A DNA stretch of 64,000 nt, taken from positions 174,778,001-174,842,000 of the forward strand of contig CM097882.1 in the NCBI GenBank assembly GCA_044892505.1. Reading direction: 5' to 3'. Shown piece after piece: positions 9,192 through 59,590 of this stretch (position 1 is its first letter; each line of letters opens with the position of its first letter). This DNA comes from Schmidtea nova (lineage: Eukaryota). The notes under the pieces are model-generated. The model saw only the letters and a program-made list of their open reading frames with translations. It did not search any database and was not told the DNA's origin. A program made the translations under genes and the position numbers.

Positions 9192-9193
9192 AT

Positions 9194-16682: not shown

Positions 16683-17251
16683 TTAGTCGTCTTTGTAACA
16701 GATAACCGCATTGTTTCGGTTGCAAACAATATTATTCCACAATCCATTTGGATAACGAGCTCCTTCCAAGCAATTTTCAACTCCAGGATTATTTGGTTCT
16801 CCTTGTTCCCAATTCCTGGAAATTGCAAAATCTTTTAACAATCCTGCTTATAAATAACAAATAATTCTTACGTGAAGGTCATTTTGCATCCACGATTATT
16901 TACCCATTTTCCGGTGACTTTTTTGTCATTGCCATCTATCCAATATCTGCCGAGGTTGTTCTTCTTGGCAAAGTTAAATACCATTTGCTAAAATATTAAT
17001 TCAAAATAATGCTGAGTTATGAATTTGCATACGTTTGTTCTATCGTCTTCGACTTTGACAAGTTTCATATTTTCTTCAATGCATAAACACGACGCAGTTT
17101 CATAATTCGTTTTTGTCGGTATTATTTTCAGTTGACTTTCAGTCAAACCTTAATAAAAGGTAAATTAATTGAAATCAAAGTCTTCAAAGGTCTTACCTTC
17201 ACACCTTTGAAGGACAAAAAGCAAAGCAAAAGCAGCTATTAAATGAAACAT
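16683..17251 (-). pseudogene. C-type lectin CTL-A copy 1, with a 1-bp deletion in exon 1
   Basis: Exons 17251-17198, 17148-17033, 16987-16872, 16815-16683, all with GT-AG introns (49/45/56 bp). The A-run at ~17217-17220 has 4 A versus 5 in copies 2 and 3, which shifts the frame into a TGA at the start of exon 2. Confidence 0.8.
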
Positions 17252-17790
17252 GATATTTGTTTTATTGAAAGTATTTGGTCATTTTATAATGATTTTATCT
17301 TTTTGTTTTCGAAAACAAATTTGCGACTTATGATATTAAAATTAATTATTGTGAGAATAATCATATGGAAAATGTATATATTCATAAGATATCAATTATG
17401 GCACCTTTAATATCCNNNNNNNNNNNNNNNNNNNNNNNNNNNNNNNNNNNNNNNNNNNNNNNNNNNNNNNNNNNNNNNNNNNNNNNNNNNNNNNNNNNNN
17501 NNNNNNNNNNNNNNNNNNNNNNNNNNNNNNNNNNNNNNNNNNNNNNNNNNNNNNNNNNNNNNNNNNNNNNNNNNNNNNNNNNNNNNNNNNNNNNNNNNNN
17601 NNNNNNNNNNNNNNNNNNNNNNNNNNNNNNNNNNNNNNNNNNNNNNNNNNNNNNTGAATCCACTAATTTATTAATTCTTTTATTTTTAATCATTTAATTA
17701 TTACTAACTGATGTGGATTTGCTTAAGTGACCTAATTTCCAAATAACTGTTAGTAAAGAGTTTAAATTACTATCTGTTATAGCTTTAGGG

Positions 17791-18907
17791 CAGTGATGGC
17801 AAACCTTTTGGCGGTGGGTCAAATTTAAATTTTTAAAAAAATAACATCGCGAGTCACATATTTCAATTAAATAGATTTATTATTAGATCAATTTTTATAT
17901 TCATTTATTTTTATTAAAAAAATTACAAAATATTCAGTATATAACTATTTTTTATTATAAATTAAATTAATGTGACATTGTTGCTGCTTTTGAGATGAAA
18001 ATTGTTGTACATCTGGATAGTATGTTATCGTTCTTAATCTTAGACATGCAGCAGTCAATTCTTTACTGAGTCAATTTCTTCCTGACGATTTTATATAATT
18101 CATGGCCGAAAATAGTTGCTCACAGGGATAAGTCGATCCGAATATTGTGAGTACAGCATATGCAAAATTTTTCATACCCATAAATGTGTTTGGCAAAGAA
18201 ATCCACGCTTGGAGTATAATATTTTCAATATTTTCTTCTGATTCATTAGAATTCATTTGGGAAACATTTAATTCTATTTTTTCAATTAAATCTTCAAATT
18301 AGTGTCTCCATAAAAAGCTATTTTGAAAAAAAGCTATTTTTTGAAATTCTTACTTAAAAAAATTTAGATAGTTAAAATTACTTACTAATTACTGAGAAAT
18401 TGTTTTTGAAATTATTAGATTTTTCTTTTATTTTATTTTTTTTAATTTGGAATTTCAAACACAGTTTGAAAATAAATATAATAGGTAACCACAAACACTT
18501 TTATTTAATAACACAATTCAACACATTGTACTTTGAGGCAACCTTATTATTTTTAAGGGCTGTCCCGAATTATGTATAATTATGGACATTATTCTTACTT
18601 TGAAACAATGTCCCATCTATCAATAATTAGATATTTAAAACTTATTTTATGGGATTTTGTTCCGTGGAGACATCTAGATTTTAGTAATAAATATTATTAT
18701 TTCACAAATATTTTGAGATTCATTTTCTATTACAAAGAAATATTTTAGAAACCAATTCTAGTTTATTCAATTATTTTAGGATTGGTTTGTGTTTTGTAAA
18801 AATTCAAAATCTACAATTTTAGAGAGACTTTCTGAACATTCTCGCGGGTAACTAAAGATTATCCATCGGGACTCCTTGACCTACGGGTCATAGGTTCACC
18901 ATCATTG
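17791..18907 (-). mobile_element. Non-autonomous hAT deletion derivative with a transposase C-terminal remnant
   Basis: TIRs CAGTGATGGCAAACCT and (reverse complement) CAATGATGGTGAACCT; flanking 8-mers CTTTAGGG/CTTTAAGG (7/8 TSD); ORF 18071-18256 contains FGSTYPCEQLFSAMNYIKS (hAT dimerisation domain). Confidence 0.88.
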
Positions 18908-21639
18908 CTTTAAGGTATTATAAGCTTGGGTTAATTTGGCATGTCGATAAGGGAAAAATCTTCGGATTCAATACTCCTCCGAAAATATTCAAGTGGAGCC
19001 GTGCGTTCTGGATAAAATTCCCATTCACAATCTGGAGAACCGACAACGACGAAAACTGCTATCGTGGAGGTCCCGTCTGGCCGATTTCAACAGATCGATC
19101 GTATTCCAACAAATTCGGCAGATTGATCATACTGATCAAGGATAAAATAAGCAGCGACCACAAGGGTAGTTTACTGGGATCACATTCTCCAATAAGAATT
19201 TGCGGAACTAAGGTTGACGTTGAAGACGTCTACAAGACCGATCAGGAGATCCCAGGAGGAAAAGCTTACTAGATTTTTTATCTCAGAATTGCGAAGGAAG
19301 CCCTTGTCCGAGGATCTGCAGATCCGGCAGGTTTTGCTCGGAACAATGATGTTGTATTCGACTGGTGTAATTATCGTTTGAATAAAAATTGTACTCTGTT
19401 ACTTTTTTTTGTTGTTAATAATACCTTTAATAAATTTAAATGGGCGGATCCGGACTCGGGTGCATCCGAATTGTAGAAACAATAAAACACATGAGAGAAA
19501 CAAAACCTTTAATATCTTTTGTTATTATAGGATGACAAAGCAACCTAACCACCAGGCCGAACTAGACAAAGCTCTTCTAATAAGGATAGGTCTGGAGAAA
19601 GAGATCGAGTGTAAGTCCTTCTAGTGGCAGCGGAAACCCGAAATGGAGAGGAGAGTGAAGAGTAGTTATTATGTTTTAATTAGTCGTTAGAATGGTTGAG
19701 TTACGAATATATTGGGTTATGATAGTTGTAGTGATGATAATTTATTTAGTTGTTTGTTGATTTTAGAAGTGAGGATGTTTCTTGTGGAGGAAAATGTAGA
19801 GCCCAAAAGAGTCTCCGGCAAAAAATATGTTAGGACAGTTTGGATAAGTGCTATGTACAGTTGTGTGAATGTGTGCGTGTGTATGTAGNNNNNNNNNNNN
19901 NNNNNNNNNNNNNNNNNNNNNNNNNNNNNNNNNNNNNNNNNNNNNNNNNNNNNNNNNNNNNNNNNNNNNNNNNNNNNNNNNNNNNNNNNNNNNNNNNNNN
20001 NNNNNNNNNNNNNNNNNNNNNNNNNNNNNNNNNNNNNNNNNNNNNNNNNNNNNNNNNNNNNNNNNNNNNNNNNNNNNNNNNNNNNNNNNNNNNNNNNNNN
20101 NNNNNNNNNNNNNNNNNNNNNNNNNNNNNNNNNNNNNNNNNNNNNNNNNNNNNNNNNNNNNNNNNNNNNNNNNNNNNNNNNNNNNNNNNNNNNNNNNNNN
20201 NNNNNNNNNNNNNNNNNNNNNNNNNNNNNNNNNNNNNNNNNNNNNNNNNNNNNNNNNTTTTATTTTTTTTCCAACTTTTTTAATTTCCCGTTATGGTTAT
20301 TTAAACTTTATTATTTTTTATCGATTTTTGTTTTTGATTTAATTTTAATTTTTATAATTTTTAAAATTTAATAATTGCTAATTATAATCAAGAATTCATG
20401 CACGCACACTACAATACACTAACAACAAAAGGGGCATCATGTGCCCGTAAGAAGAAAGCACATAATAAAAATCATAATAAAAATAACAATAATTTAACCT
20501 TACAGTAGTCTTTTTGAAAGCGCTCATCTGTTCACTCATCTCTCACCCTCTTACACAGTTCCAACATGGTGATCCGGGGAAATTGCCATGGGTATGTGAG
20601 TGGAGGATGTTATTTTTATGATTGGGATGTGTGCGACATATATTCCCTTTACCATACCAAGTCCTATGTCCACCACAACCAAAAGAATCCACCAACATTG
20701 TTTCTTTCTATTTGTTCCCAAAAGATCTATGCAAATTTAATTTTACCGATGACTTAAGCAATCTGCCCCCATTTGCGGACTCAACGACTCGAGTCCCCGA
20801 AAGTCAGCGACCCAGAGGGCCGTCATGACCTTGAATACCATGAATGTTATAAATCATTTTTAAACACAGAAATACTAAAGACGATTATGTATGAGGGGTT
20901 AACCAAATAAATCAAAAACAAACAATAAAGTTACTTGTATTAAGTTTTATTTAAGAACAATTTACGAGAATGTTCTATTATAATATCTTTTGAATTTGGA
21001 TCACAAATAGTGGATACTAACAGTAATTAATAAAAAGTTAAATAAAAAATTTTAAGTTGTCGGAAAAAGTCTTTTGTACTGAAATTGACTGCTCCTTTAA
21101 TACTGCTTTGCTAATACAATCAGCCAATCAGCTTTCTGTCGCCCCCGTAATTGGTTGTAAAATTTCAAAATTTTATTCAATTACATTTTTGGTTTTCCAG
21201 CCAATTATTTTCTTTTATTTTCTTATTCGTCCAATTCATTTTGAATTGTTTTTAATTTATTTTTATTTTATTTTTCATTTAATTTCCAATTTAGGGGTTT
21301 CGTCGGTAATTGTTTTAAATTATACTCTTTTTTTCATTTCTTTGATATTTCTATTCTTTCTTTTTCTATTTCATTTCTTATTTTTCTTTTATATAATTTA
21401 TTTTAATTTGTCTTTTAGTTTTAACTTGTTTTTTATTTCTTTTAACTATTTTATATTTATTCCTTCTTTTAGAGGTTGTATTAACTCGACAATAAATACT
21501 AAATATTATATAGTATACATTTGATATGGCTGATTATTTCATACTTGTTAACAGCATTGATCATTTATGTGCAATTTACTATGTAACACAGGAGTGGCCA
21601 ACCGGCGGCATTCTTATATTTATAACTATAGTACCTTCG

Positions 21640-21641
<2 letters not shown>

Positions 21642-21692
<51 letters not shown>
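21642..21692. repeat. (AT)n microsatellite (others at ~5265-5285 and ~9165-9190)
   Basis: Direct reading. Confidence 0.95.
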
Positions 21693-21695
<3 letters not shown>

Positions 21696-23043
21696 TTTAA
21701 ATTATTGTTATATATTATATAAGTATATATATTATTAAATTAAATATAGTTTATTTTACAAGTTAAGTAATCGTTGTTTTAATTTTGACAAAAAAATGGC
21801 AAGCAAACAAATTCAAATGCAAAGATTACAGTTTCATTTAATAAAACGCAGCAAACAAATTCAAATATAAAGATGAAAGATTTATTAAATAAAAAGCAGC
21901 AAGCAAACTCAACACCAAATATGGCGGTTTATTTAAATATGAAGAAGGAAGCAGTTCAAAACTCAACGCGTCGACATTTTTGTTTAAATAAAATTTTATT
22001 ATTTATTGTAATTTATTTCAGAGTTACTATAATAACCATAGAAATATATCTTGTTGTTCGTTCATTAGATATTTTCTTTTTATATCTAGTTATCTCCCTC
22101 AAATTTATCATTAAAAATTGATAAGTACAAAATTATTTGTAAACCCAGAAAAAGGATAAGAACAAAATATTCCATTTATTCTCATGTATGTGCGGTCCTT
22201 GAAACAATTTGGGTAGGCCAGAATTGACATATTGTGGGGGAAATTGATATATAGCGATGGCAAATGGAGAGACGTTTACGAATATGATAAAAAATATCAA
22301 TGGGGGATCCATAGAAAAAGTTATTCATTAAATAAAAATTAATTAAAAATTACTGAATAATTTATTAGTTATATAGCAAATCCGAACTAATGGAAAACCC
22401 GATATAAAATCTAATTATAGGATTTGCAATCCGAAATAATTGTCCAAAGTTATGAGACAACAATCATCTAAATTCTGCGAAAATTCAATTATAAAAAAGG
22501 ATAACATATTACATACCTATTGTAAAAATTTAATTGAAATGTTGACGCAATAAAATTACTATAAAAAAACAGCAGAGCGACGGTAAATCGCCAGTTTGGA
22601 AGAAGCAAAAAATTATTCTGGATTACAACACATTTAGTAAGTGAGGAGTGTGATTATCAGAAATCTAATATTAGCAAATCACAAGCGTATCAGAAAGAGC
22701 AATCTGCCCTTGGTAAACTTAACCCTTTCACTGTAATAAAGAAGAGTGCTGAGCGTCTTGCAGAAATTTAAAATTGTATTGATTTATCGTTTGTAAATTG
22801 TGGAATTCAATAAAGGTTATTGTGTTGGGTTTTGGTGATTTGTAATAATAGGAGCACGAGGAGTCAGAATAGAAACCGGCTCAAAATAAATAACCCAACA
22901 TTATTATTATTACTTTTATAATGGATATGTAAATTATTTAATTTTAAAAATATTATATTTTAAAAATTAAAAATTTTTAATATTTTTATTAATCAAATGC
23001 CATTGGCCTTAATTAAAATGGCTTAAGTGTAAAGAATTGGTCA

Positions 23044-23713
23044 CTAATTTTGTTTGTAGCAGATAACTGCATTTTTGCGATAACAATTCCCATCTCCCCA
23101 GTAGTCATTTGCGTATAACCCTTTCAAACAGTCGGCATCATCGTGATTATTTGGCAATCCAGGATACCAGTTACTAAATATAACACAAATGAAAAAGAAT
23201 ACACATTATAATGCTAAAAGTTACGTATATTTCATTTTACAACCGCTATTATAGACCCATTGGCCTTCAGTCTCAATATCATTTCCATTTATCCAATATT
23301 GGCCAGTTCGTTTCTTCCTTGCAAAATTATAAACCAAAGTCTGAATTATAAAAATAACTTTTAAAAAGTTACTTATTTAAACACAAAAACTTACATTTGT
23401 TTGTTTGTCTTTAATTGTTATCAACTTCATTTCTTGGGACTTGCAGAAACAAGCTGCTCCTCTATAAGTTACATTAAGAGGCAAAACGACAAGTTGGTCT
23501 TCGGTTATTTGAGCTGCTTATAAAATATAATTTAATTAATTAAAATTGTTAAGAAGGTTAATAAATGAAAATTCATCACAAATAAGCCTAATAATAATGA
23601 TATCAAGCATCACTCAAAAATGGGCAATAAATAATGTAAAAATATTTACCATTGAATTCTGATGGGAAAAGGGCAAAAATAACAAGAAATGGGAACATAA
23701 ATATTGGAATCAT
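23044..23713 (-). CDS. Secreted C-type lectin CTL-B copy 1 (143 aa, 4 exons)
   Basis: Exons 23713-23650, 23516-23395, 23340-23225, 23173-23044 splice in frame: MIPIFMFPFLVIFALFPSEFNAAQITEDQLVVLPLNVTYRGAACFCKSQEMKLITIKDKQTNTLVYNFARKKRTGQYWINGNDIETEGQWVYNSGCKMKYTNWYPGLPNNHDDADCLKGLYANDYWGDGNCYRKNAVICYKQN*. It has a signal peptide, a WIxG motif and the CTLD cysteines. Confidence 0.9.
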
Positions 23714-24283
23714 TATTTTTATTATATATCACTTTTTATTATGAATATTTTAGGTATTTATAACTCACTTTATCTTTGTTTTCTTTCATTGTTTTTGCGC
23801 TGACATGTTTTCGCTATTTTATTTACGTGTAATTACATGAGAATTCAACAGTTTTATTTTTGACATTTTTCCAAATGCCGCCACGGATTTATTTTGATTA
23901 TTTTGTAGATATTAGTATAATCATGATTTCATTTTTAATATATACTTTTTTTAAATAATAATAATAACCTTACAAAGTGCCTTATCCGACATTCTTTAAG
24001 GATTTTCAATATATTTTAAACTTATTTTACATGGCACTGCTATTATGAATCAAATTTATAAAATCTAATTCGATTTATTTTTCCACTTCCTTTTTATATA
24101 GATTTAAATGAGTTACAAAATGATATTGGAAATTTTAATTACAAGATAATTAATAAATTTTATCTATAAAATATTTTAAATGAAAAAAAATTTTCAAAAA
24201 AATTTTTGGTAAGAGCTATTTACAAGTATTTCAAAACTGGCTATCACTAGTATTTTATTATTGTATAAATAAACATTGTAAGG

Positions 24284-24362
24284 CAGCGTTTTCCAACCCT
24301 TTTACGATTATCGCCCATTTCCAATTGCTGAAAATTCAAATCGCCCAGATTGGGAAACACTG
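24284..24362. mobile_element. Tiny hAT-type MITE remnant upstream of CTL-B (also in copies 2 and 3)
   Basis: CAGCGTTTTCCAA ... TTGGGAAACACTG imperfect TIRs; no TSD seen. Confidence 0.5.
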
Positions 24363-25178
24363 GGGTAGAGTAGATGTAACTACATGAAAGGTAATGTGTG
24401 TGCGTCATATATTGTTATACTATAAAGATTGACAAATTGAGGGCAGAGGTGTATGTAGACGGAGGTCATTTATAGGATTTGTTTGTGTGTGTCTGTGCTA
24501 TATATATAGTATCTAGATTCTAGAATTTAGAAAGATACGGAAATATTAAAATTTTAAGGCAAACAGTAATGTAAGGTATGCTATCATTTAGAACGTGGCT
24601 TTCATTGCTTAAAGCTTCATTTTTTGTTGATCTTTTAATTCCTTACCTAATTTTTCTGTAAAATATTGTTTTATTGAAGATACATATAAAAAATCCCTGC
24701 TCAAAATTTGCTTTATCATTAAAGATATCAAAAAATGCCAATCATTATTATGCTACATCATATCCAAAATATAAAATAAAGTAACATTGTGCTGGTGTGT
24801 TGGTTAGATGGACAACTGAGATCATCAAGATTTTATATGTTAGGGTGATCTCGCCAACATAAAAACATTCCCCCGCTGACACCCATGATGTATCCCTAAC
24901 TACTCATCATGTTGGTGCTGTGTCAACGTTGTGAAATGACAAGGCAGGTGAGCAACCTTGCGGCTACTATTCCCTTGTTTATTCACGGGTCCACCACTAC
25001 CGATAGAAGGTGTTTGTGGATTTCTTTCGGTCCCTTTATATCTCGCTCTTTCCTGTGCTCTAGGGTTAATTCAATTTTAACGTATCTGCAGCTTCAAATG
25101 AACCAGGTTTTCATTACATTTAATTCTCATACATTCCGCAGATAAACAAGACAAGTCAAATCATTCGTCTATATACAT

Positions 25179-25817
25179 TTATTTATAATTTAACAACATT
25201 GAGGGTCTAATTACATTCAGTAATTCTTGCTCTGATAGTCCACTGAGCAGATCTACCTCTAGGCCTAGGCGATCAGCATATGCGCGTCGTTCCCTACGCT
25301 TTTTCGCTCCTAAGCGATTCCTTCGCTTTGTCCTTTGCGACCCTTGTGGAATCATTGTTGTTACTTCCGTAGACGATGTTATGATTGTTTCAGTTTCGGT
25401 TTGTGTACCTGTGGTTGTTGACGTCGAATCTATCCATTTGTTGAAGGTACTCGCCCTAATCACTGGGCGTAACTGCTCTGAGATGAATTCTTGAGTCGAC
25501 ACTCTCAAGTAATTAGATAGCTCCAGTTTCAAGGCTGCGACCTCTCTAGCCTGATCGTTGGCTACTTGTTCGGCTCTGTATCTGGCTTGCAGGATGGCTT
25601 TAACCCTTTCGGGATTAAACCACGTTGTTTTTTTCCTTTGATGTTCAGCGCTTAGCTGTCGTAAGCGATTTTCCAGAACGCAAGATCGTGCCCTATGTTC
25701 GCGTGCCTCGTGCTTGTAATTTCGTTTCGGATTCTCGTCCATATCTGGGAAATATATCATTAAATAGGGTATGTATGATTTGTTTGGTTTCTCAGTCACC
25801 ATTTTCTCGTCAAACAA
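25179..25817 (-). CDS. Orphan ORF2 (up to 212 aa; likely ATG at 25802 or 25742): coiled-coil, Thr-rich tract, basic NLS-like C-terminal region
   Basis: Uninterrupted frame; the stop overlaps AATAAA on the minus strand; no recognisable domain. Confidence 0.6.
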   Translation of the reverse strand: MFDEKMVTEKPNKSYIPYLMIYFPDMDENPKRNYKHEAREHRARSCVLENRLRQLSAEHQRKKTTWFNPERVKAILQARYRAEQVANDQAREVAALKLELSNYLRVSTQEFISEQLRPVIRASTFNKWIDSTSTTTGTQTETETIITSSTEVTTMIPQGSQRTKRRNRLGAKKRRERRAYADRLGLEVDLLSGLSEQELLNVIRPSMLLNYK

Positions 25818-25936
25818 CTACACTCTATCCTTACTCATTTCACATGCATCCAAAACCAAAACAAAACCCTTTTGAATGGATACATATATTTTAATTTACA
25901 ACAGATGTTCGTTCTTTGGAGGGATCATTCTCGCGA

Positions 25937-26572
25937 TCAATTGTATGGACGCAACTCCTGATCGGCAGGGTTCTCGTCCCGGCGAATTCCTGTTTCATGA
26001 TATAGTTCGGGCGCTGGATTCCAACTCAGTCTGTTTTGATAGATGAACACCTCCCAGAGGCGAAGATCCTTGGGCTCGGGGTGTTGATCCACTGAGACGC
26101 TTCCGGGAGCGTTTGGGTAGACGAAGACTTCCCCAGTGTCACTACACCGAGGCCTGTCTAGCAGCAAATACCCGAGTTGGCAGAATGCCTGCCCGGTCAT
26201 TATTCCGGTACTCAGTAACCAGCGGGGTTGCTGTACCTCATCTACGAATTGGTAGAACCATCTAACGGATCCTCCTTTGGTAGAACTCGGGGAAGGCGTC
26301 CAATCGACATCGCCTTCCCACCTCAACTGTAGCTGGAATGCACAGGCGGGAATACTGGCCGCTGCACTCATATGGGTCCTTGTCCATCGACGCAGGTGTC
26401 TACGTGCGGAGTTGAAAATTGGGCGTGGAGCCTCCTTCTCTCCTTTGATTTCGGAAGTTATTCTTGGTATGATGACGGAGCGGATGCGCCGTTTCCTCCG
26501 TAGAATATACTCCTCTAATTTGATGGGTAGGGGGTCTACCGGCTCCTTCATAAAATGTTCCGTTTTTATCAT
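25937..26572 (-). CDS. Orphan ORF1 (211 aa): basic N-terminus (RRKRRIR) and Trp/Pro-rich body
   Basis: Uninterrupted ATG-initiated frame with ACC-ATG context; no recognisable domain. Confidence 0.6.
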   Translation of the reverse strand: MIKTEHFMKEPVDPLPIKLEEYILRRKRRIRSVIIPRITSEIKGEKEAPRPIFNSARRHLRRWTRTHMSAAASIPACAFQLQLRWEGDVDWTPSPSSTKGGSVRWFYQFVDEVQQPRWLLSTGIMTGQAFCQLGYLLLDRPRCSDTGEVFVYPNAPGSVSVDQHPEPKDLRLWEVFIYQNRLSWNPAPELYHETGIRRDENPADQELRPYN

Positions 26573-27569
26573 GGTACTTCTGAAAGAAATGTCCAGGTTA
26601 ACCGACAGCGTCTATCATTGATCATCGATATTTATATCGATCAACCTACTTGGCTTATCGCTCTATTTGCCGTAGGCCTCAGTAGCTCATACACCGTTTA
26701 TTAGACCAGTGGTCACGATATCCATGTAGGTTGCAGTTAAGGTTTTACTTTGGTGAGTTAATTCACTCCGCAATTTTTGGCGGTTTTAGCTACTCTCATT
26801 TCACGTCGGTATTTACAATAATACATTATATTTTTTTATGTTCAATTTCTCATCGATCATTTTCATTCATTCAACACGGTTCGTTTACCGATCATCATCA
26901 GCAACTATCAAGGTTCATGTCACGGGGGAGAAATTAGTAATCCCTTAGTCAAACTGCTTTGTCAAGAAACGTACCAATTTTGGTTTTCCTACTGTCGGGA
27001 TTGACCTTTCATACCCTCCGAGGGTTATATTCATATGTTAGAAGCATATTCGAGTTACTACTACTTCTTGATGCTAGTGTCTTTTGTCCGCGACGTTACG
27101 CTTTACATATCTCTACTCTCGTCGACTTTCGATGTATCAGCACTCCTTGAAGGTACACACCCTCGTTGAGATATCACCAAGCATATATACTCCATGCGAA
27201 GTTAAATTTTACTTTGATTTGATTTATGACCCTCATCTGTTACTCGATACCCTATGTGCATTTACCCCTTCCGCTTATCAAATAGTTAGTAAACCTATAG
27301 TCCCGCCGCATCAGCACCTCACATAAAAATGTGTTGCGCTGAGAGGCCCAAGAATCCGTCAGGCTGTTAGGCCTCCGGAAAACCTTTTGGATTTTAGCAT
27401 GATTATGAGGGTTTAAACAAATCAAAAACGTAACTCGAAATTACCTTTTATTTTCGCTTCCAAATCAGGTTCACAAGATTACTACAAGTTATCAGTTACA
27501 ACTTGCACTCGGTAAAAATGACATATTGTCAATACTGATTTATCTTCAGTATTTATACTAAACCGGTGT

Positions 27570-29989: not shown

Positions 29990-30219
29990 GTTATGTGATC
30001 AAATTAATATTTTTATGTAGTTATTTTTGTTGATATTGTTATTGTTATTACTTATTAATCATATGATAATTATTTCCGCCTCTTCCTCAAATTCTTGTGA
30101 TAATATAGTCGTTTATTCCCTATAGTAAGTACCTTACCAACTTACTAAGGAAATTCAAAAATTCAAAAATCAATGGAAATTTTAAATTTGAAAATGACAT
30201 AACAACAGGAAAGTAAATT

Positions 30220-30636: not shown

Positions 30637-30819
30637 AAATTGTTTTTAATATTAATTTATTATTTTTTTTATTTGTAGTAAAAATAACTAATTACGAACG
30701 AGTTTTTGAAAATTTTTTTTTATAACATCAATTGCCTATTTAAACAATTGAAATTAAATTAAACACAATAATTAAATTAAGCACATTTCCCCATGATGTC
30801 GTCATCAATATCGCTCGTT

Positions 30820-47114: not shown

Positions 47115-49204
47115 CATGGGCGCCCGCATAAAATTTTCTAGGAGGGGGCAAAATATTTTTAGTAATGTTTTAATGTAGTTTTAATTTACTGTAGAGTATT
47201 TGTATGGTGAACGAACGAACAGGACACTGTAGTAATGAAGGGCATACTGTAGCAACAAATTTTTTATTAACACAATATATGTATATAACAAAAAATATTA
47301 TAACATAAATTTAAAATAAAATTTATTCTTTAAACAAGAACTGGAGTCATCTGTTATCACTATCAAACATATCTACAATTTTGTCCATAAAGTCTTTTTT
47401 GTTGCAGTTCACTTTGTCTTTGTGTACGCTTAACATGCACAATCCAGACAGACGTTCATCTGACATTTTAGATCTAAGCCATGGCGTTTGAGAGGTTTTA
47501 AAGATTTTCAGATATCCATGACGCCTAAAAGTAACAAGGAAGACAAAGATAAAGAATAAAGAAGAAAAAACAAAAAACAAAAAACAAAAAAGAAGAAACA
47601 AAAAAGAAGGAAACTTAAACTAAAACTAAAATCCAACCAGTCTCCATAGGCCTGGTAGAAATTAAAATAAATACAAGTTAACAAACAAAAATCTTTATAA
47701 TAATATAACATAATTAACAAAATAAATTATGTTAATTTATAATATAACAAGCTTAGTAATTATAACTAAAGGAAAATAATCACAATAATTAGATCACAAT
47801 AATCCATGTTGCACTCTGTCACCTAATACTTAACAATGAACTTTGAACAATTATTTTACACTCATGTATACTTTGAATTACTTATAAAAGTTGATGTTTG
47901 GTTTCGTAATTTATTATGGATGGACATAGAATGGTATAGGTAGATAGGAAAATAAATAATTAAAATAACATCATTTATTTAAAGAAAAAGATACAGAAAA
48001 ATATTTCTACGATAAAAATCTAAAAACTTAAATTATACGCTATTCCCCGTAAAAATTCTAACGTTGTTCTACTATGTCGGTTATTTTCAATCGTTGCCAA
48101 TACCTGGTTTTTCTCTAGATATTGTTTTTTACGTTAGGGCCGCGGTTCCCCCAGAATTATGGATTCCGTTGCAGCTGCAGTGCTGTCTTGTTTTTGTCTT
48201 AACTGCTTAATTATGTAGAATACCCCAGGATGATTTTTTCCAACCAATATTTGCCATCTTCTGTGCCTACCCTCTACTTTGTTTTGAGTTCTTGGTATGC
48301 CGTTTATTTTGTTGTCATATATAGACCAAAGCTGAGGTTGAAAAAGTGGTGGGACTCTCTATTCTCTTCAATTTATATTCTTTAATCGGCCATTCACATA
48401 ATTTTCTTAGAACCATGTCACCACTTCTTCAGCAGTAGGGGGTAATATATTTTTACCAGACTTCTCTTATATAACATGAATTATGTAACGTATCTAGTTT
48501 TTACATTCCGATATACGAAGTATAATTTGTCAATAAAAATCAATTTATCTAATTAGATTACTTAACGACATTTATATGAAAAATTAGAGTGACCATTTGT
48601 CTGTCGGCATTTTGTCTGTCGGCCTATTGTCTGTCGGCCTTTTGTCTATGTCGACATCTTGTCTGTCGGCCTTTTGTCTCTGACGGCCTTTTGTCTATGT
48701 CGGCCTTTTGTCCGGATCCCAATTAAAATAGATGATTTATATTTTTCTAATACTTTTTTGGTGGCGAAGGTCCCACGCCCATCGGCCAATTTTCTCTTTT
48801 GCGGTTGACATTAAGGAGAGCATGTAATATATTAATGTATGGTAAGGTTTAGTAATACTAACAGCTCGATTCACAAGTCTATTAATATAAAGGATACAGG
48901 GGTATTTGCTTAGGTAAATACAATACGTCGCGAAGAGTTTACGGAACGCGTTTCTTCTTTAAGCGGTAGGGAAAGAATGATCGGCCCAAGCAATGAGGCA
49001 CAGGGCCGAACGCTTGACGCTCACGTCACACCGGTGATTCGCCAACCTGGCGATGATGTTGCTCCAGGCCGTCCAACGTTCTGCCTCTCATACTTTTTTA
49101 TGCTAACACAAAGTGATTTAAAATAAAAGTAACATTATTTGAGTATTTTCAATCAATCCAGGGGGATCAAGTGCCCCCTTGCCACCCTCCTGCGGGCACC
49201 CATG
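47115..49204 (-). mobile_element. Internally deleted hAT, copy A2 (A3 starts at 62043 and runs off the window)
   Basis: Same TIRs and the same ACTGTGAA TSD as A1. Confidence 0.92.
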
Positions 49205-51497
49205 ACTGTGAAGATCAATATTTTCTATAAATGAAAACTAAATCAGAATAGGCAAAATTCAATATCAATCATCAAATATCCAACCATATAAACCTATATA
49301 GGTAATAATATGATAATGATATTTTTCGTTATTGCTGAGATTTTAAAGTTATTTTTCGGTTTTAAACTGAAAAAAGCATTCTGTTCACCGATTCACAGTG
49401 AGCATAGAATGAAATAGCAATAATATTGAAAATGTATCAAGAATTTTTATTTAGGGTTTATTTGTTATTGAAGATATCCAATTTTATACATTGACCTGTG
49501 TACTAAATCAATTAAATAATTATTTATATTAATTACAAATTAAAAACCTTGTGTTAATATGTTATTAATTTGATAATAATAGATTTTTAAAACTTGTCTT
49601 ATTTTATTTAAAATGCTAAATAACTTAGAAGACAACATTGGTGTCACAAGTGCGGGTCAAGAAAGTAGCCACATCCATTTGAAAATTCCAACCTTTTTCG
49701 AAAATGTGTCAGTTTGGTTCAAGCAAGTAGACGCAGCATTGGAACTAGCATCAATCAAAAATAAAAAAAATCAAATACTTTCACTTGTTACACAGTCTAC
49801 TATCACGTGTACTCGAAAAATACTCGTATTTAATGGATCAACACATTAGCCATCCATATTCAGCTCTAAAAGAAGAATTATCAATGACACAAAAGAAGCA
49901 GCAAACAAATTTTCGCAAAAGTAGAAACTTAGAGATTGTAAACCAAACCAATTTCTCATAGAAATAAAAGAGAAACTACAAACAAATCGAGCCTGACGGT
50001 GACCCAGAAACCAGCAAAATTCTCAGATACCAGTTAATCACCTGCATGCCAGTTCATATTCAACATTACTGATATCAAGCAACGCTGGCATTGAAAATTG
50101 GCCAAAGTCGCCAACTTGTACGTAAGCATTAATGATTAGTATATTTCACAGGTGTAAAGTGAGATCATTGTCGGAAACTTCCATCATCTTGCAATAGAAA
50201 ATTTGAAAGACCAAATCAATGCCATAATGGCAAATAAAAACTCAATCCAAATGGAACACCGTTCAAGTGAAGAAACAATATTATTTTCACAGAAGATTCG
50301 TAAAAGAAACCAGGAAATTCCAGAATCCTGCTGTTGGTGCGATTCAGCTAAGTTTGGAAAAGACCAAGAATCTATTTAATGTCTACGACAGGGATCCAAT
50401 GCTCAACTCAACAGTCAACAAATATTAATGCACTGTTTTATTTTATATAAAATGCTAAATAACTTAGAAGACAAATCTTTTATTAAACAAATTTTTATTA
50501 TCTGTTTTATTATAATTTATACCGTTCCGGTTAAGTATAAAATGACTAGTTAATAAACCCTGTAGAAAATTTCTCGTATACAACTTCTAAGTAAATTCGA
50601 TATTTTACGCTAAGAAAAAATTAAAAATGTAAACATTTCGTTTATTTTCATATTCTCAGACAATATATCTAAGATAATTTTCGAATTCAACATAAATTTT
50701 CGGCACTGTTTTTAAAAATATTTATTCAATATTTTTAAATTAATTAATTTTTTATGAAACTCTCACTATTTTAGTATGTGAAAAACAGAATGATATCGCT
50801 TTTTGATAGATCTTTTATCTATATTGTTTGATGCACTTTGGTGATTTCTTATTTATTTTAAAATGAAGATCTGGTGAAAATGAAAAAATTGATCCTTGTT
50901 GCTTAAATTGATCTCCACAGTTAATAATTCACAAATTCAGTCATTACAAAATGACATAAAAAATATTTTTATTTCCCGTAAAAATTAAAAAAAAATTATT
51001 TGAAAATGTTTTCTAAATTGCTTTTAGTGATTCTAAAATTTATGTAATGAAATTGTGATTTATGAAGATTATTAAGTGTAAAATTATATTTATTGTTCTT
51101 GACAAAAAAGAAAACTGCTAAAGCAATTTATATTAAATATATTAAAGGTAAATAAAGCACGGATAATATGCAAAAATTCATTACAATGCTAAAGAATTAA
51201 AGAAATAATCGAATACATTTTTTGCTAATTGTAAAGAAAGCTCTTTCGGTATATGCAAAATTAAAAAGTAGTTATGCATGTCTATGAATAAAACTCCATT
51301 TTAAATTATCCAATCGAGAAGCAGTATATAAATAATTCTTCAATTGTATGTTCAGCTTGAATTTCAATAAATAAACATCTTGATCAAATGTCACGTTATA
51401 ACCATAGACGAAAAATTAAATAAGAAGTATTTTCATTTATGACAAGAACAAAAATTTTATTAAATTAACAAATTTTTTAATTTATATCGTTATATCA

Positions 51498-52066
51498 TTA
51501 GTCGTCTTTGTAACAGATAACCGCATTGTTTCGGTTGCAAACAATATTATTCCACAATCCATTTGGATAACGAGCTCCTTCCAAGCAATTTTCAACTCCA
51601 GGATTATTTGGTTCTCCTTGTTCCCAATTCCTGGAAATTGCAAAATCTTTTAACAATCCTGCTTATAAATAACAAATAATTCTTACGTGAAGGTCATTTT
51701 GCATCCACGATTATTTACCCATTTTCCGGTGACTTTTTTGTCATTGCCATCTATCCAATATCTGCCGAGGTTGTTCTTCTTGGCAAAGTTAAATACCATT
51801 TGCTAAAATATTAATTCAAAATAATGCTGAGTTATGAATTTGCATACGTTTGTTCTATCGTCTTCGACTTTGACAAGTTTCATATTTTCTTCAATGCATA
51901 AACACGACGCAGTTTCATAATTCGTTTTTGTCGGTATTATTTTCAGTTGACTTTCAGTCAAACCTTAATAAAAGGTAAATTAATTGAAATCAAAGTCTTC
52001 AAAGGTCTTACCTTCACACCTTTGAAGGACAAAAAGCAAAGCAAAAGCAGCTATTAAATGAAACAT
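51498..52066 (-). CDS. Secreted C-type lectin CTL-A copy 3
   Basis: Appears identical to 36604-37172 by eye, with the 5-A run intact. Confidence 0.9.
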
Positions 52067-53509
52067 GATATTTGTTTTATTGAAAGTATTTGGTCATTTT
52101 ATAATGATTTTATCTTTTTGTTTTCGAAAACAAATTTGTGACTTATGATATTGAAATTAATTATTGTGAGAATAATCATATGGAAAATGTATATATTCAT
52201 AAGATATCAATTATGGCAACTTTAATNNNNNNNNNNNNNNNNNNNNNNNNNNNNNNNNNNNNNNNNNNNNNNNNNNNNNNNNNNNNNNNNNNNNNNNNNN
52301 NNNNNNNNNNNNNNNNNNNNNNNNNNNNNNNNNNNNNNNNNNNNNNNNNNNNNNNNNNNNNNNNNNNNNNNNNNNNNNNNNNNNNNNNNNNNNNNNNNNN
52401 NNNNNNNNNNNNNNNNNNNNNNNNNNNNNNNNTAGCAGCATTAAGTATTAAATAAATTTGTAAATAAGTAACAAAATAAGGTTTTGCTGCAAAAACAATT
52501 TTAATAACTGAGAAAATTTTCCATTATAAAATAATCCTGGTCAATCTTTAATTCAGTATATAACTGGTACTTCATTCATTTATGCTGTTTCTTTATCGTG
52601 AATTATCTTCTTTTTCATTGGATGTTAATCTATTTAATATAAATTTTAAATTTTAAATTCTTAATTGTTTTTAAATGATTTTTTGTAAAAATTTTTAAAA
52701 TATAAAATAAAAACTCTAATATTTTTCAAATGTTTTCTAAATTTTTTTATTAATGTAAAATTTTCGATCAGTGGATTGAAGAGAATTGTTTTATAATCGA
52801 AAATTTTATTCATTTATTACCGTGTGTGTTTATTTGAAAATATTTATTTTAATTTTGATTAATATTTTTATTTATTTCTACCGTATAAGCTTAAGTGTCT
52901 AATTAAATGTCAGTTTGTATTATTAAATACGCATATATTTAATATAAACTAGTTTTTTAAAAGTATTGAAATTTAAATCAACCTGTAGAAATAATTACGT
53001 GGCGCACCATTTTCTCTGTACTGGCTTGGTGGTCAAACAATTACCGAAGGTGCTAGTGCGAATAAAGCCTCCTACGAGAAGTTGGATGAGGCAGAGCGCC
53101 AGTTACCAAGCGTTTGTGGTGAATTGGTCATACCATTTGCACCATTTTTTGTTGTATGTACTCGAAATTTTCTGACAAAATTCTAAGTCCCTAACGGTTT
53201 TTTGTTCATTTACGATCGCCTTCAAGTCGTAGTCAAATGTTTTAACGATGACAGTAATAAACGTTTTAATATCTTTTTGGTGCATTTTGCAGACCGGCAG
53301 CTGATGGCACATGGACCGACTACGTTCCGTGGGCCACCACTTTGAGAATCACTTATTTAGGGTCTAATCAAATGCACTTTGGTGTTGAAGTATGTAGTAT
53401 CATTGAAATACACAAATTAATACAGTGCGCCAACTATTATTTTGAATATTTTCCTTAAAATTTTTATGTAGATACAATGTTTCTGTCAATGTAATACAAA
53501 TATCAAATA

Positions 53510-56500
53510 TAGGTCACTATATTACATGCTCTCCTTAATGCCAACCGCAAAAGTGAAAATTTGCCGACGGGTGTGGGACCTTATGATATCATTATCCTAG
53601 TAAATTCCATCTTCCACGCAAGTCGCCGCCAAAAAAGTATTAGAAAAATATAAATCATCTATTTTAATTTCGTTATAAATTTAGTTGTATGAGCTACATG
53701 TTTTATTGTACAGTCCAATTTTTGAATAATTAATGAGGTTATTTGCACACACAGTTGTTAAAGTTATTTTGTAAGCCTTTACTAATCTAATTATTGTGAT
53801 TATTTTCCTTTAGTTATAATTACTAAGCTTGTTATATTGTAAATTAACATAATTTATTTTGTTAATTATGTTATATTATTATTAAGATTTTTGTTTGTTA
53901 ACTTGTAATTATTTTAATTTCTACCAGGCCTATGGAGACTTGTTGGATTTTAGTTTTAGTTTAAGTTTCCTTCTTTTTTGTTCTTTCTTATTTATTCTTT
54001 TTCTTTGTCTTCCTTGTTACTTTTAGGCATCATGGATATCCGGAAATTTTTAAAACTTCTCAGACAGCCACAGCAAAAGACTCCAAATGTTGAAGAAAGA
54101 ACTTTAACTCATGTCTGTAAAATACTGAAAACGGATGCTGTTGCTTGTTCATTTGCAGCAGCAACGCTATCACCAGAACCAGACCCTGACAAGCTTGAAA
54201 GTGGAGATACTAGGTTAACATATGAAATTGGACTCTATGTAAAATCTAATACGAAGATTCCTATCGATCTTAAGCTTAAGTATCGTTTGCTAACTGCTCT
54301 ATACAAACCTCACCTGTCATATGATTTTGAAGGCGACATGTCAGGAAGTGGAATACGTTGTTTCAGGGAATCTTGGCTAACCCAGTATAGTACATGGTTA
54401 TCATATTCATCTAGGTTAAAAGGTGCTTTTTGCATTTTCTGTGTTTTATTTCTGCAATCAGTTCAAAGAGGAATCCAAGGAGCCTTCATTACTACTCCTT
54501 GTATAAAGTACAAAAATTTTAATGAATGTGCCAGAAACTATATCAGCTCAGCATGGCATCGTGGGTCTCAAAAAGATGCTGAACACTTCAAGTCAACCAT
54601 TAGAGATCCAAATAAGGATATTGTTTGTTAGATAGATAATTCTGTAAAACGAACTATTGAAGAAAACAAAAACAAACTATATCCTATTATTTCAACAATA
54701 TTATTTTGAGGAACAAATGATTTGGCAATTCGTGGGAAAGGCAGCACTAAAGGAAATGTCGAACAACTTTATGCTTATCGAATTGAGGGAGGAGACAGTA
54801 TTTAAAAAAAACATTTTGATACAGTTGCTGGAAATTCACGCTACACATCACACCAAACGCAGAATGATTTGATCAATTTGTCTGAACAAGCTCTGTGAGA
54901 AGACATTGTAAAAGCTGCTAACAATGCTGTTGGATTCTCGATCATAACCGATGAAACAGCAGATATGTGACGAACAGAACAGTTATAACTGGGAGTCCAG
55001 TTTGTAGATAAGTCTAGTGAGAAGGCTATAATTCGTGAGGAATTCCTTGGATTTTCTCCGCTGAAAGGTATTGACGCCGCCACAATATCTGATTGTATTA
55101 TTCAGCATAACAAAACATTTGGTTTTCTCCTTAATAATCTGCTGGGTCAAGGTTATGATGAATGCTCGACAATGGCCGTAAAAGAAAATGGTGTTCAGGC
55201 AAAAATTCGAAGTATTTACCCCAAGGCTGTCTTTGTTCACTGTGCCTTTCACAGACTGAATCTAGTACTAAATAACCTTAATAATGTTGCAGTGATACAA
55301 AATACTATTGGTTATATCAAGGGTGGGCACGCATGAGTTCAATGAGAGACAATTTTCGATAATTTATTTTTTAAAGAGCCACCATAGTAAAGTACACATT
55401 TTTTTTATTTCATTAATTTGATTAAAAAAGACCTAAACGCTATTAAAACAAAAAGAAAATAATTATTTCAAAATTTAAGTAACAAAAATATAATATAATA
55501 AAAATCCATTAATAAAAAGTAATGAAAATCCATTAATAAAAAGTAAAAAAAAGTGAAAAATTCCAAACCAAAAAAATCAGTGGAAAAAAAATCGAATTCA
55601 ATTTTCAAATTCAATTATCAATGAGCCGCAGTTTACTCAACGAAGAGCCGCATTTGCCCACCGTTGGGTTATATCAAAGCAATTATTACATTCTTTCGTG
55701 AAAGCCCAAAAATGAGGTCCTCTGTCCCAAATATTCTTCTTCTGTGTGAGACAAGACGGACAAGCAAGTATAAAGGTATTCGGATTTTTTCTAGTAAATT
55801 TGAAGATATTTATTGTCAACTGGAAGCATTTTCTTGCATACAAGTGGAAATACAAGACAGGCTGCATATCAGTTATATTGCTCATCGAAGTCCAGCACGT
55901 TTTTAATTTGTCTCAATATTATTTCGCAGTACTCTGCCATACTGGAATCAGTTACTCAGGCTCTTCAAGCTGTTCAAGTTGATCGTCCAGAAGTTCAACT
56001 GCAAGTTCAAACCCTGCTCAGTGTAATAAAACTTCACCGAGGTGATTCCGATAACTATTTCAGGGATATTTTTGAGAAAACAGTGCAACTCGCACAAAAA
56101 GTGGATATTGAAGTTATTATCTCAAGACAGTGTGGAAGACAAAAGCATCGAAGTAATCCGGGAACCATAAGTGTTGAAGAGTACTTCAAACAAGCAGTTT
56201 ACCTTCCATACTTAGATTTTCTAATTACCTCAATGGAGAGTTGATTTTGTGAAGCCAACACTGTACAATTTAACTTAGCGTTGCTACATCCTTCGAAATT
56301 GTGCAAACTGAATCGTCAACAGTTTAAGGATATAATGTCTACTATTAATAAGGTATACCACATTGATTATTTTGAAACTTAAGCCTTGAGTTGATTTGAT
56401 TTTTGGGAAACGCGAGAATACAAAAGTAGCCAAGATTTCATCGACTTGTTACCTAATACAAAGTTTTATCCGAGTTTCAGGTATGCTTTACTAGTTTTGC

Positions 56501-56922
56501 TAACATTACCAGCAACAACATGTACGGTGAAGCGACCGTTCAGCACATTACGTCTTGTATAAACATGGCTTAGATCTACAATATCAGATGAACGTCTGTC
56601 GGTATTGTGCGTGTTAAACGTACACAGAGACAAAGACAACTGCAACAAAAAAGACTTTATGGACAAAACTGTAGATGTTTTTGGTAGCGATAACAGACGA
56701 CTCCAGTTCTTGTTTAAAGAATAAATTTCATTTTAAATTTATGTTGTAATATTTTTTATATTGTGTTAATAAAAAAGTTGTTGCTACAGTATGCCCTTCA
56801 TTACTACAGTGTCCTGTCCGTTCTTTCACCATACAAATACTCTACAGTAAATTAGAACTACATGAAAACATTACTAAAAATATTTTGCCCCCCTCCTAGA
56901 AAATTTTCTGCGGGCGCCCATG
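53510..56922 (+). mobile_element. hAT copy B2 with decayed transposase 54032-56724
   Basis: Duplicate of B1 with a few SNPs (LEPVT>LESVT; VYIPYLDS>VYLPYLDF). Confidence 0.88.
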
Positions 56923-58920
56923 TTCACAGTAGAAAACTAAATGAAGATAAATGAAATTTTGAAGGAGTGAAAGAGATATGCAAATGTGGAGAGTCAAAAT
57001 ACAAACAAAAAATAATGATGTTAACAAATGTACAGAGTAAACTAGATAGAGAACTAGTTACGTGATTATTGTCCAAACGAACTAATCTATTACAACAATG
57101 ACTTCAACGATTGGAGCGGGACCAAGAAGACTTAAAGGAATATAACGAAGGCCTAAAATGATAGTGTGGAACATGAGGAAAGCTGAAATAAAGGAGTTTA
57201 TGAGCTCCCAAGTGGCCAATGACATCCAAACCGTAATGAAAATAATAGAATTTCGAGGACCCGAGAATCTCAACGCAAACACCGCGACTAAGGACATCCA
57301 CGAACGAAAACAAAAGAAGTTCAATAGTAAAGCTCGGCTACGGTACAAATGGAAACAAGAGGCTCAGGTGAAATGTGCTAATGAAGCTGGCGCTCTTGAG
57401 ATACTGAAAGAAATTTATTGCCAGTTGAGTAATGACTTTTAGATATTGTAGTACGGCTAAATAAATGTATCTAATTGTGTTTTCGCTAGTCTTATCCGTA
57501 AATCTAAAATGATCCAAGCTTCCCTTAATGTCTTAGAGAGTCAAATAAAAGTTGAACGAACCCTAATAGCAGATCTCCTTAACTAAGCGTTCCCATAAAT
57601 GCAATTTGTGTCTTCTATCGGAACAGATAGGTGATAGGCAGAGTATTGATTCAAAGTGAGATAAGTGAGCTCATTGCTGACATAGGCTGTCAACCACTAG
57701 CATGTATTACCAACGTGAGTGTACACGGGTATGCTCGGTGGAAAATAGTTTGATGAACCGTGGGAATTTTGTTTGATGATGTTTCACCATGTAAATCAGG
57801 GTCAAACNNNNNNNNNNNNNNNNNNNNNNNNNNNNNNNNNNNNNNNNNNNNNNNNNNNNNNNNNNNNNNNNNNNNNNNNNNNNNNNNNNNNNNNNNNNNN
57901 NNNNNNNNNNNNNNNNNNNNNNNNNNNNNNNNNNNNNNNNNNNNNNNNNNNNNNNNNNNNNNNNNNNNNNNNNNNNNNNNNNNNNNNNNNNNNNNNNNNN
58001 NNNNNNNNNNNNNNNNNNNNNNNNNNNNNNNNNNNNNNNNNNNNNNNNNNNNNNNNNNNNNNNNNNNNNNNNNNNNNNNNNNNNNNNNNNNNNNNNNNNN
58101 NNNNNNNNNNNNNNNNNNNNNNNNNNNNNNNNNNNNNNNNNNNNNNNNNNNNNNNNNNNNNNNNNNNNNNNNNNNNNNNNNNNNNNNNNNNNNNNNNNNN
58201 NNNNNNNNNNNNNNNNNNNNNNNGACAAAACAATTTGTATTTATACTTTCAATCTGAGCCAGATTAACGTCGTCTTCAAAATAGCTACAGATAAGATTTT
58301 AATAAAAAATTAAAATTTCAAAGGGAGATTTATTCTCGAGAATTCATTAAAAGAGCTTTTTTTATGAAGGAATTATTCTAATTGTGTATGGGGAAGTGAT
58401 TTTCTTTTTGATTTTTTAAAATGTTTTTATTTAAAAAAGAGCATTTTATTAATTAAAAAGACTTTGACTCTATATGATTTTTTAAATTTTTTTTAAAAAA
58501 GGACGCTCTAATTACTGAAAATTATTAAATAAAAATAATTTTAAATTTTGTTTAAAATAAAAATTTTATTTAATATATCTCAAGAATAAATCTTAATTTG
58601 TATTAATAATCAACATTAAATCAGAATTCGAGAGGAAGAAAATATCCAGGAAGAAGTGTAAAGTCAATTTGAATAAATTTCGTATTGGAGTGATCAGGAT
58701 CTTTTTAAGATCGAAATATTTCATTTAAATAAACATTGCGGAGAAGGCTTACTATTGTTATCATGTTATTACTTATTATTATGTTATTACTTTTATAATG
58801 GATATGTAAATTATTTAATTTTAAAAATATTATATTTTAAAAATTAAAAGTTTTTAATATTTTTATTAATCAAATGCCATTGGCCTTAATTAAAATGGCT
58901 TAAGTGTAAAGAATTAGTCA

Positions 58921-59590
58921 CTAATTTTGTTTGTAGCAGATAACTGAATTTTTGCGATAGCAATTCCCATCTCCCCAGTAGTCATTTGCGTATAACCCTT
59001 TCAAACAGTCGGCATCATCGTGATTATTTGGCAATCCAGGATACCAGTTACTAAATATAACACAAATGAAAAAGAATACACATTATAATGCTAAAAGTTA
59101 CGTATATTTCATTTTACAACCGCTATTATAGACCCATTGGCCTTCAGTCTCAATATCATTTCCATTTATCCAATATTGGCCAGTTCGTTTCTTCCTTGCA
59201 AAATTATAAACCAAAGTCTGAATTATAAAAATAACTTTTAAAAAGTTACTTATTTAAACACAAAAACTTACATTTGTTTGTTTGTCTTTAATTGTTATCA
59301 ACTTCATTCCTTGGGACTTGCAGAAACAAGCTGCTCCTCTATAAGTTACATTAAGAGGCAAAACGACAAGTTGGTCTTCGGTTATTTGAGCTGCTTATAA
59401 AATATAATTTAATTAATTAAAATTGTTAAGAAGGTTAATAAATGAAAATTCATCACAAATAAGCCTAATAATAATGATATCAAGCATCACTCAAAAATGG
59501 GCAATAAATAATGTAAAAATATTTACCATTGAATTCTGATGGGAAAAGGGCAAAAATAACAAGAAATGGGAACATAAATATTGGAATCAT
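58921..59590 (-). CDS. Secreted C-type lectin CTL-B copy 3
   Basis: Appears identical to copy 2 by eye. Confidence 0.9.

Follow-up and report, generated by a model that had tools for sequence, protein, structure and literature searches.

The 64-kb window of genomic DNA analyzed here (the whole stretch of 64,000 nucleotides, numbered from its first letter) harbors six small genes for C-type lectin-like domain (CTLD) proteins, which belong to two paralogous types, A and B, and lie amid satellites and transposon remnants. We consider it likely that the region represents a recently amplified tandem array of an old pair of small secreted CTLD genes. Gene models were derived from a six-frame motif scan of the window, a tblastx comparison of the A region with the B region, and a reading of splice sites in the sequence. 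The motif scan recovers the lectin C-terminal exon six times, always on the minus strand; the tblastx comparison recovers three colinear conserved coding blocks, and the fourth, a leader exon, was read from the sequence itself. The resulting models comprise three A genes of 139 codons and three B genes of 142 codons, each with four exons on the minus strand (Table 1), with introns that are all GT-AG and in phases 1/0/2 in every gene (48, 45 and 56 bp in A1; 136, 54 and 51 bp in B1). In A1, the CxC motif falls in exon 2, the GC-KM motif in exon 3, and EPN and WNN in exon 4. All six reading frames, all 18 introns and every cysteine are intact.

The interval first marked for this cassette, 16683-59590, coincides exactly with the A1 stop codon at one end and the B3 ATG at the other, and a tblastn search with each exon peptide found no lectin genes or fragments in the window beyond these six. 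An initial annotation of this DNA had described four exons with identical intron phases in both paralogues, three successive A-B pairs on the minus strand, and the absence of either gene from the open reading frame (ORF) track. The first and last of these descriptions agree with our models. The A-B order is that of ascending coordinates; along the coding strand, from 5' to 3', B comes first and the genes follow one another as B, A, B, A, B, A. The lectin genes are missing from the 60-aa ORF track because the longest stop-free stretch of any lectin exon is 53 aa.

Copies of each type are nearly or fully invariant. The A1, A2 and A3 coding sequences are identical (0 of 420 nt differ between A1 and A2), as are those of B2 and B3, and B1 differs from B2 at three nucleotides: a Glu to Gly change in exon 2, an Ala to Ser change in exon 4, and one synonymous change. 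The exon 2 acceptor of B1 is a NAGNAG site, with an alternative acceptor 3 nt upstream. TATA-like boxes lie at 17282-17288, 31-37 bp upstream of the A1 ATG, and at 23755-23762 for B1; in the vicinity of the boxes, A and B have proximal flanks that can be aligned only weakly, with a score (37) that is not clearly above shuffled sequences (mean 25.9, maximum 46).

Domain fold, ligand sites and cysteines

Searches were run exon by exon, while domain-wide tests and structure predictions were carried out on two database proteins, P0012 and P0010. Exon 4 matches the Pfam Lectin_C family (PF00059) in both A (20.6 bits, E 7.8e-4) and B (21.2 bits, E 5.1e-4), over positions 70-107 of the 107-position profile; exons 2 and 3 alone have no Pfam match. 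Against the PDB, the exon-4 profile matches SP-A, SP-D, MBP-A, conglutinin and selectins at E of about 2e-6, and the exon 2 and exon 3 profiles give non-significant yet correctly placed CTLD hints (PLA2R and DEC-205 at E 0.4-1.6, tetranectin at E of about 1). A word search with exon 4 of A recovered nothing, as its length filter would lead one to expect. The exon-4 profile, used to search proteins, matched 219 of them at E <= 0.001; P0012 (148 aa) and P0010 (129 aa) belong to this set, and both are UniParc-only entries (UPI00060B0AA9 and UPI000606C1D0, respectively). Exact-sequence look-ups of these two proteins and of two exon ORFs from the window matched no recorded contig. P0012 is colinear with A, at 86.6% identity over exons 2-4, and P0010 is likewise 86.6% identical to B. 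Exon ends in our models map to adjacent residues of these two proteins, which independently supports the splice junctions.

Over the full domain, Lectin_C scores are 45.2 bits for P0012 (profile 2-107) and 48.4 bits for P0010, with a cut-off of 22.6. AlphaFold2 models of the two proteins, built from alignments of 112 and 40 family domains, reach predicted local distance difference test (pLDDT) values of 93.9 and 96.2, and superpose on human MBP, CL-K1 and SP-D with a root-mean-square deviation (rmsd) of 1.1-1.3 and template modeling (TM) scores of 0.80-0.88; the top Foldseek matches are human MBP (1hup, rmsd 1.1) and CL-K1 (TM 0.88). The four canonical cysteines (C1 in alpha-1, C2 in beta-3, C3 after beta-4, C4 in beta-5) are present in all six genes and fall in invariant columns of the 112- and 40-sequence alignments. 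Sequence and predicted structure together identify A and B each as a single short-form CTLD with the fold of a collectin carbohydrate-recognition domain (CRD), in keeping with the C-type lectin identity first assigned to them.

Residues of the Ca2+ sites were mapped by alignment to human MBP and SP-D and checked by direct-coupling analysis of 454 domains, which ranks the C1-C4 and C2-C3 pairs second and third and recovers Ca2+ sites 1 and 2. Under Drickamer's EPN/QPD rule, EPN and WND form Ca2+ site 2 for the binding of mannose and N-acetylglucosamine (GlcNAc), and QPD specifies galactose. The five canonical site-2 ligands comprise, in order, two from EPN (Glu, Asn), the Glu before C2, and two from WND (Asn, Asp). 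A carries Glu, Asn, Glu, Asn and Asn at these positions, leaving four of the five unchanged and the Asp replaced by Asn (WNN), as in P0012. B carries Leu, Asn, Ala, Gly and Asp, a loss of three ligands (LPN, Ala before C2, and WGD), as in P0010. At site 1, the canonical Asp, Glu, Asn and Asp read Asp, Thr, Asn and Asn in A, and are kept at all four positions in B and P0010. These site states, including the EPN with WNN of A and the LPN with WGD of B that were noted at the outset, are present in every copy, and their recurrence in P0012 and P0010 argues that they are stable features and not decay. B and P0010 also have in common an N-x-T sequon in exon 2.

It is plausible from these residues that A binds mannose, GlcNAc or fucose-type sugars with one unusual ligand. 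B, by the same reading, cannot bind sugar in the canonical manner, because three of its five site-2 ligands are gone, and it may hold a Ca2+ ion at site 1. The initial suggestion that B is neofunctionalized and possibly Ca2+-independent is thus upheld as to the loss of the canonical site 2; Ca2+ independence finds no backing here, where all four site-1 ligands are kept.

All six genes carry two cysteines beyond the canonical four: one in the CxC of helix alpha-1, two residues before C1, and the other in the GC before KM, at the hairpin tip after the WIGL-type strand. Among 457 domains from the 150 best matches, both extra cysteines occur in two (P0012 and P0010 only) and neither occurs in 453, where both positions are polar and of surface type. 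The initial annotation had singled out this pair as conserved in A and B, and its rarity among relatives sharpens that observation. A PDB search with the segment spanning both cysteines recovered no chain with the same pair, and the direct-coupling analysis, which ranks the pair 1995 of 6903, is silent on it. In each mature chain, the cysteine count is even. The two residues may form a third disulfide, and their distribution would fit a single gain in an A/B ancestor.

Exon 1 of A and B (55-64 nt) encodes, by eye, 11-15 hydrophobic residues in a row with small residues after them, and the two proteins are probably secreted, with about 120 residues after the leader. Of their earlier description as secreted single-domain paralogues, the leader-like hydrophobic exon is therefore present in both types, and secretion itself is a prediction from it. 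The first exon of the database model of P0010 is probably a mis-prediction. The P0010 N-terminus is encoded at 23789-23766 (also at ~44738 and ~59666), upstream of the B leader exon and over the TATA-like box.

Relatives and comparable lectins

In a phylogenetic tree, the A-like and B-like proteins fall in a supported clade (97/91) with the multi-CTLD proteins P0002, P0151 and P0001, which are UniParc-only entries, and with the environmental sequences P0005, P0017 and L002. A and B are not resolved as sisters in this tree, and the approximately unbiased (AU) test does not reject their sisterhood (p 0.39). These multi-CTLD and environmental relatives are 40-47% identical to the A-like and B-like proteins, but they have two to eight tandem domains in which WND is combined with EPN or QPD. 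Their domains contain four cysteines each, without the CxC and GC cysteines of the pair. L002, on a metagenome contig from ENA (1013 bp, 27% GC), is a canonical EPN/WND relative with four cysteines, laid out as a leader followed by exons 2, 3 and 4; its intron positions and phases are those of A and B, its introns measure about 40 bp, and exon 4 is followed by another donor site, which suggests a multi-domain gene. The pair had been described as lineage-specific, which is apt for the A/B subtype only; the clade as a whole also takes in multi-domain proteins, as well as environmental relatives whose introns sit at matching positions.

The best sequence and fold matches to A and B are the CRDs of collectins (MBP-A/MBL, SP-D, SP-A and CL-K1/collectin-11), with which both share a short-form CTLD without an N-terminal hairpin and the four canonical cysteines, and with which A also shares EPN and the Glu before C2. 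Unlike collectins, A has WNN, B has LPN and WGD with three site-2 ligands gone, and both have the two extra cysteines; nor do A and B have a collagen-like Gly-X-Y region, a coiled-coil neck, or any further exons within each contig. Membership of A and B in the collectins was ruled out, as only the 55-64 nt leader exon precedes the domain. The "scarf" proteins of the planarian Girardia tigrina (P0031 and P0182-P0186) are also small secreted CTLDs, match the exon-4 profile at 63 bits and belong to the same broad tree group, but they group in a neighboring clade of their own with good support, represent another phylum, and do not have the two extra cysteines.

A further candidate was the SWT ("sweet tooth") family of Hydra cuticle proteins, a large tandem family of secreted proteins named after a receptor with "C-type lectin-like" domains; its members are 370-390 aa long and carry two SWT domains, for which a beta-sandwich fold is predicted (PMC3531485). 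This assignment was rejected, as the size differs and the published SWT peptides are unrelated to A and B.

Repeat units, surroundings and copy number

The genes are carried by three repeat units (Table 1). Units 1 and 2 are 97.6-99.2% identical in their aligned parts, and spacer X1 (17655-22899) is unrelated to spacer X2. A 75-bp segment is tandemly doubled in spacer Y1 (33976-34127) and single in Y2. Judged from the 0-2.4% divergence between units, amplification of the A/B pair is recent. Between A and B themselves, synonymous differences (pS 0.77) are saturated while nonsynonymous differences (pN) stand at 0.33, and it is this disparity that indicates an old duplication under purifying selection.

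Table 1. Positions of the lectin genes, repeat units, contigs, assembly gaps and spacer elements in the 64-kb window
Feature	Position	Strand	Details
Gene A1	16683-17251	minus	exons 17251-17197, 17148-17033, 16987-16872, 16815-16683
Gene A2	36604-37172	minus	exons 37172-37118, 37069-36954, 36908-36793, 36736-36604
Gene A3	51498-52066	minus	exons 52066-52012, 51963-51848, 51802-51687, 51630-51498
Gene B1	23044-23713	minus	exons 23713-23650, 23513-23395, 23340-23225, 23173-23044
Gene B2	43993-44662	minus	exons 44662-44599, 44462-44344, 44289-44174, 44122-43993
Gene B3	58921-59590	minus	exons 59590-59527, 59390-59272, 59217-59102, 59050-58921
Repeat unit 1	16328-36251		19.9 kb; A1, spacer X1, B1, spacer Y1 with three inserts found only in unit 1
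Repeat unit 2	36252-51145		14.9 kb; A2, X2, B2, Y2
Repeat unit 3	51146-64000		continues past window end
Contigs within the window	4437-17415, 17655-19888, 20258-37332, 37541-42915, 43296-52226, 52433-57807, 58224-64000
Assembly gap upstream of A1	17416-17654		165 bp from the ATG
Assembly gap upstream of A2	37333-37540		161 bp from the ATG
Assembly gap upstream of A3	52227-52432		161 bp from the ATG
Assembly gap downstream of B2	42916-43295		698 bp from the stop; homologous to the gap downstream of B3
Assembly gap downstream of B3	57808-58223		698 bp from the stop; homologous to the gap downstream of B2
Assembly gap in spacer X1	19889-20257		between A1 and B1; ~2.8 kb downstream of the B1 stop
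Truncated transposase-like ORF	28912-29991	plus	DUF4371 / zf-C17orf113, hAT-related; in the unit-1-only insert 28566-29989
Repeat of ~3.2 kb in spacer X2	38893-42083	plus	copy in X3 at 53785-56975; ORFs 39086-39739 and 40921-41352
Unit-1-only insert of 3.2 kb	24791-27951	minus	GC 36-41% (29% overall); two ORFs of 211-212 aa

The window, at 29% G+C and a CpG observed/expected ratio of 0.96, contains seven runs of N. None of these assembly gaps lies inside a gene model or coding exon, so that the reading frames are unaffected. Gap positions are homologous to the base in all units: upstream of the A genes, three contigs break off at one and the same equivalent base, and the gaps downstream of B2 and B3 correspond to each other. 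Continuous gap-free sequence joins only B1 to A2 (contig 20258-37332) and B2 to A3 (contig 43296-52226), and every stretch from the 3' side of a B gene to the 5' side of an A gene crosses two gaps.

These gaps bear on the number of copies. Across 14.4 kb, only 12 substitutions and 2 indels separate units 2 and 3 (34051-49072 and 48930-64000), and seven of these substitutions are clustered within 133 bp beside the 75-bp tandem duplication. Because these two units are nearly identical and have gaps at shared positions, only two copies per gene are firmly distinct on the sequence at hand: A1, with its unique downstream flank, and A2/A3, with a Y-type flank; and B1 and B2/B3. The cassette had initially been described as amplified three times, which is correct for the assembly as written; the near-identity of units 2 and 3 makes the third copy doubtful, and the third A/B pair may represent assembly redundancy. 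The array may also extend beyond the window.

It is a serious possibility, if one that we do not favor, that the array is real but shorter than it appears, with unit 3, and possibly also the identity of A1 with A2 and A3, contributed by the assembler and a true count of two A and two B genes. Such a result could arise if the repeat was walked twice, or if near-identical haplotype contigs were set in tandem. Besides the scarcity and clustering of differences and the recurrent gap positions, this reading would account for the middle contigs 37541-42915 and 52433-57807, which are of exactly equal length (5375 bp); for the last 5777 bp of the window, which are 100% identical to 43296-49072; and for an identical stretch (34199-37332 and 49078-52226) that exceeds the length of a Sanger read. 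It would also accommodate the A1 region, which is identical to that of A2 across 895 bp, introns included, although the rest of unit 1 has diverged by 1-2.4%, a pattern that points to gene conversion or to a contig end assembled from reads of all copies. However, the two middle contigs differ by five substitutions and are therefore not one contig used twice, tandem repeats are more often collapsed than expanded by assemblers, and A1, A2 and A3 have three distinct downstream contexts inside contigs.

The spacers consist of transposon remnants, as the initial annotation had indicated in placing the lectin genes within transposable-element debris: a Hydra-type fragment with DUF4371, a repeat of 3.2 kb whose inverted copies carry deletions, and a GC-richer 3.2 kb insert. 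The transposase fragment is 93-96% identical to five Hydra vulgaris proteins, its next named matches being to aphids at 34-43%, and no gap separates it from B1 and A2, which share its contig. This fragment, together with the low G+C content (Hydra has an A+T-rich genome), makes it very likely that the window derives from Hydra, either from the H. vulgaris group or from a close relative. A planarian or rotifer source, which the scarf relatives and the environmental matches had brought into view, was set aside on account of the fragment, and a human source is rejected on the 29% G+C and the CpG ratio. Internally deleted, inverted copies of the X2 repeat occur at 32123-32840, 47062-47483 and 61990-62411; its ORFs have no Pfam match, and a search for terminal inverted repeats in it found none. 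The two ORFs of the GC-richer insert have no family match.

At lower coordinates than the array, two AT-rich satellite arrays at 1-3402 and 6047-8845 (units of 32, 42, 83 and 105 bp with a common core motif, GC 14-22%) lie inverted to one another on either side of a (TAA)n run at 5751-6034 and a gap at 3996-4436. At 9778-13699 on the plus strand lies a Polinton/Maverick-like remnant made up of a zinc-finger ORF, an ORF resembling Endonuclease_7, and a type-B DNA polymerase of the protein-primed kind (PF03175, E 1.7e-23), broken into at least three ORFs. Scans of the window for Rfam families and tRNAs gave no matches.

Origin and possible roles of the pair

The evidence above suggests a history in which A and B would derive from an ancient duplication, a segment of about 15-20 kb with both genes would then have been duplicated head to tail, and later transposon insertions and deletions would have set unit 1 apart from units 2 and 3. 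Functionally, A may bind mannose, GlcNAc or fucose-type sugars through a site 2 that retains EPN, the Glu before C2 and, from WND, the Asn, while a second Asn stands in for the Asp. B, with its structural Ca2+ site 1 kept, probably recognizes something else or partners another protein. The pair may serve as surface, gland or immune lectins.

Several observations weigh against a recently amplified array of functional secreted lectins. The gene models are predictions from genomic sequence. The exon-4 Pfam scores fall below the gathering score of 22.6, and full-domain membership rests on the 86.6%-identical proxies; in the database, the models of both proxies begin with different first exons, which lack a signal peptide. 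When P0012 was used in a word search, it recovered only itself and no relative of similar length, current Hydra vulgaris proteins included. The Asp-to-Asn change in A may weaken Ca2+ binding, and the A promoters are cut off at about -160 by the assembly gaps. Finally, between units the introns are as unchanged as the exons, so that the recent copies carry no sign of selection.

A more specific deployment may also be considered. A and B could be nematocyst or venom-auxiliary lectins, or digestive secretions of gland cells, in place of the immune or mucus lectins initially proposed. C-type lectins are reported recurrently from cnidarian nematocyst and venom proteomes, and the small, secreted, disulfide-rich character of the proteins and the tandem amplification of their genes would suit such a role. 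Yet nothing links A or B to any cell type, and reports on other C-type lectins of Hydra place them in neurons and in responses to symbiosis; we regard this assignment as unlikely.

Less likely again is the possibility that A and B form a heterodimer in the manner of the alpha and beta chains of snake-venom lectins, with the extra cysteines bridging the chains and B as a non-sugar partner, an arrangement that would account for the joint amplification of the two genes. Snaclecs of snake venom consist of two paralogous CTLD chains from duplicated genes, with sugar binding lost in at least one chain. The strict A-B alternation and co-amplification are suggestive of such an arrangement, as are the maintenance of both types at equal divergence in a relative and a cysteine pair that is common only to A and B, at positions that are polar and surface-type in other family members. 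But co-amplification is trivial when one duplicated segment holds both genes, the even cysteine number of each mature chain fits an internal bridge, and both monomer models are compact and confident. Snaclecs, moreover, dimerize by loop swapping and one interchain cysteine, and their cysteine positions differ from those of A and B. A fuller version of this idea, in which A and B would make up an obligate two-chain lectin, with B as a site-1-only non-sugar partner, a new cysteine bridge within or between chains, and a unit that varies in copy number between Hydra strains, as a cnidarian counterpart of the venom alpha/beta C-type lectins, has a very low probability.

That the copies are silent, recently duplicated, non-functional passengers in transposon-rich, gene-poor DNA seems highly improbable: only six small genes occupy 64 kb of satellites and transposon remnants, and the changes between B1 and B2 are two nonsynonymous and one synonymous, but the frames, introns and cysteines of all six genes are intact, pN lies far below pS between A and B, and both types are 86.6% conserved at a second locus or in a second genome, without change at any site residue.

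The reading of the locus as a recently amplified array of an old CTLD pair does not introduce a new principle; tandem, lineage-specific expansions of small secreted C-type lectins are common in invertebrates, and this array adds a further case. The assembly caveat raised by units 2 and 3 is relevant to lectin gene counts from this draft. The array could also be of use to Hydra biologists as a compact pair of lectins which present gene sets may overlook or model wrongly, and one that carries a cysteine pair absent from 453 of 457 related domains. Within a single locus, A and B offer a natural comparison between a domain in which site 2 is largely intact and a domain in which only site 1 appears to be retained.

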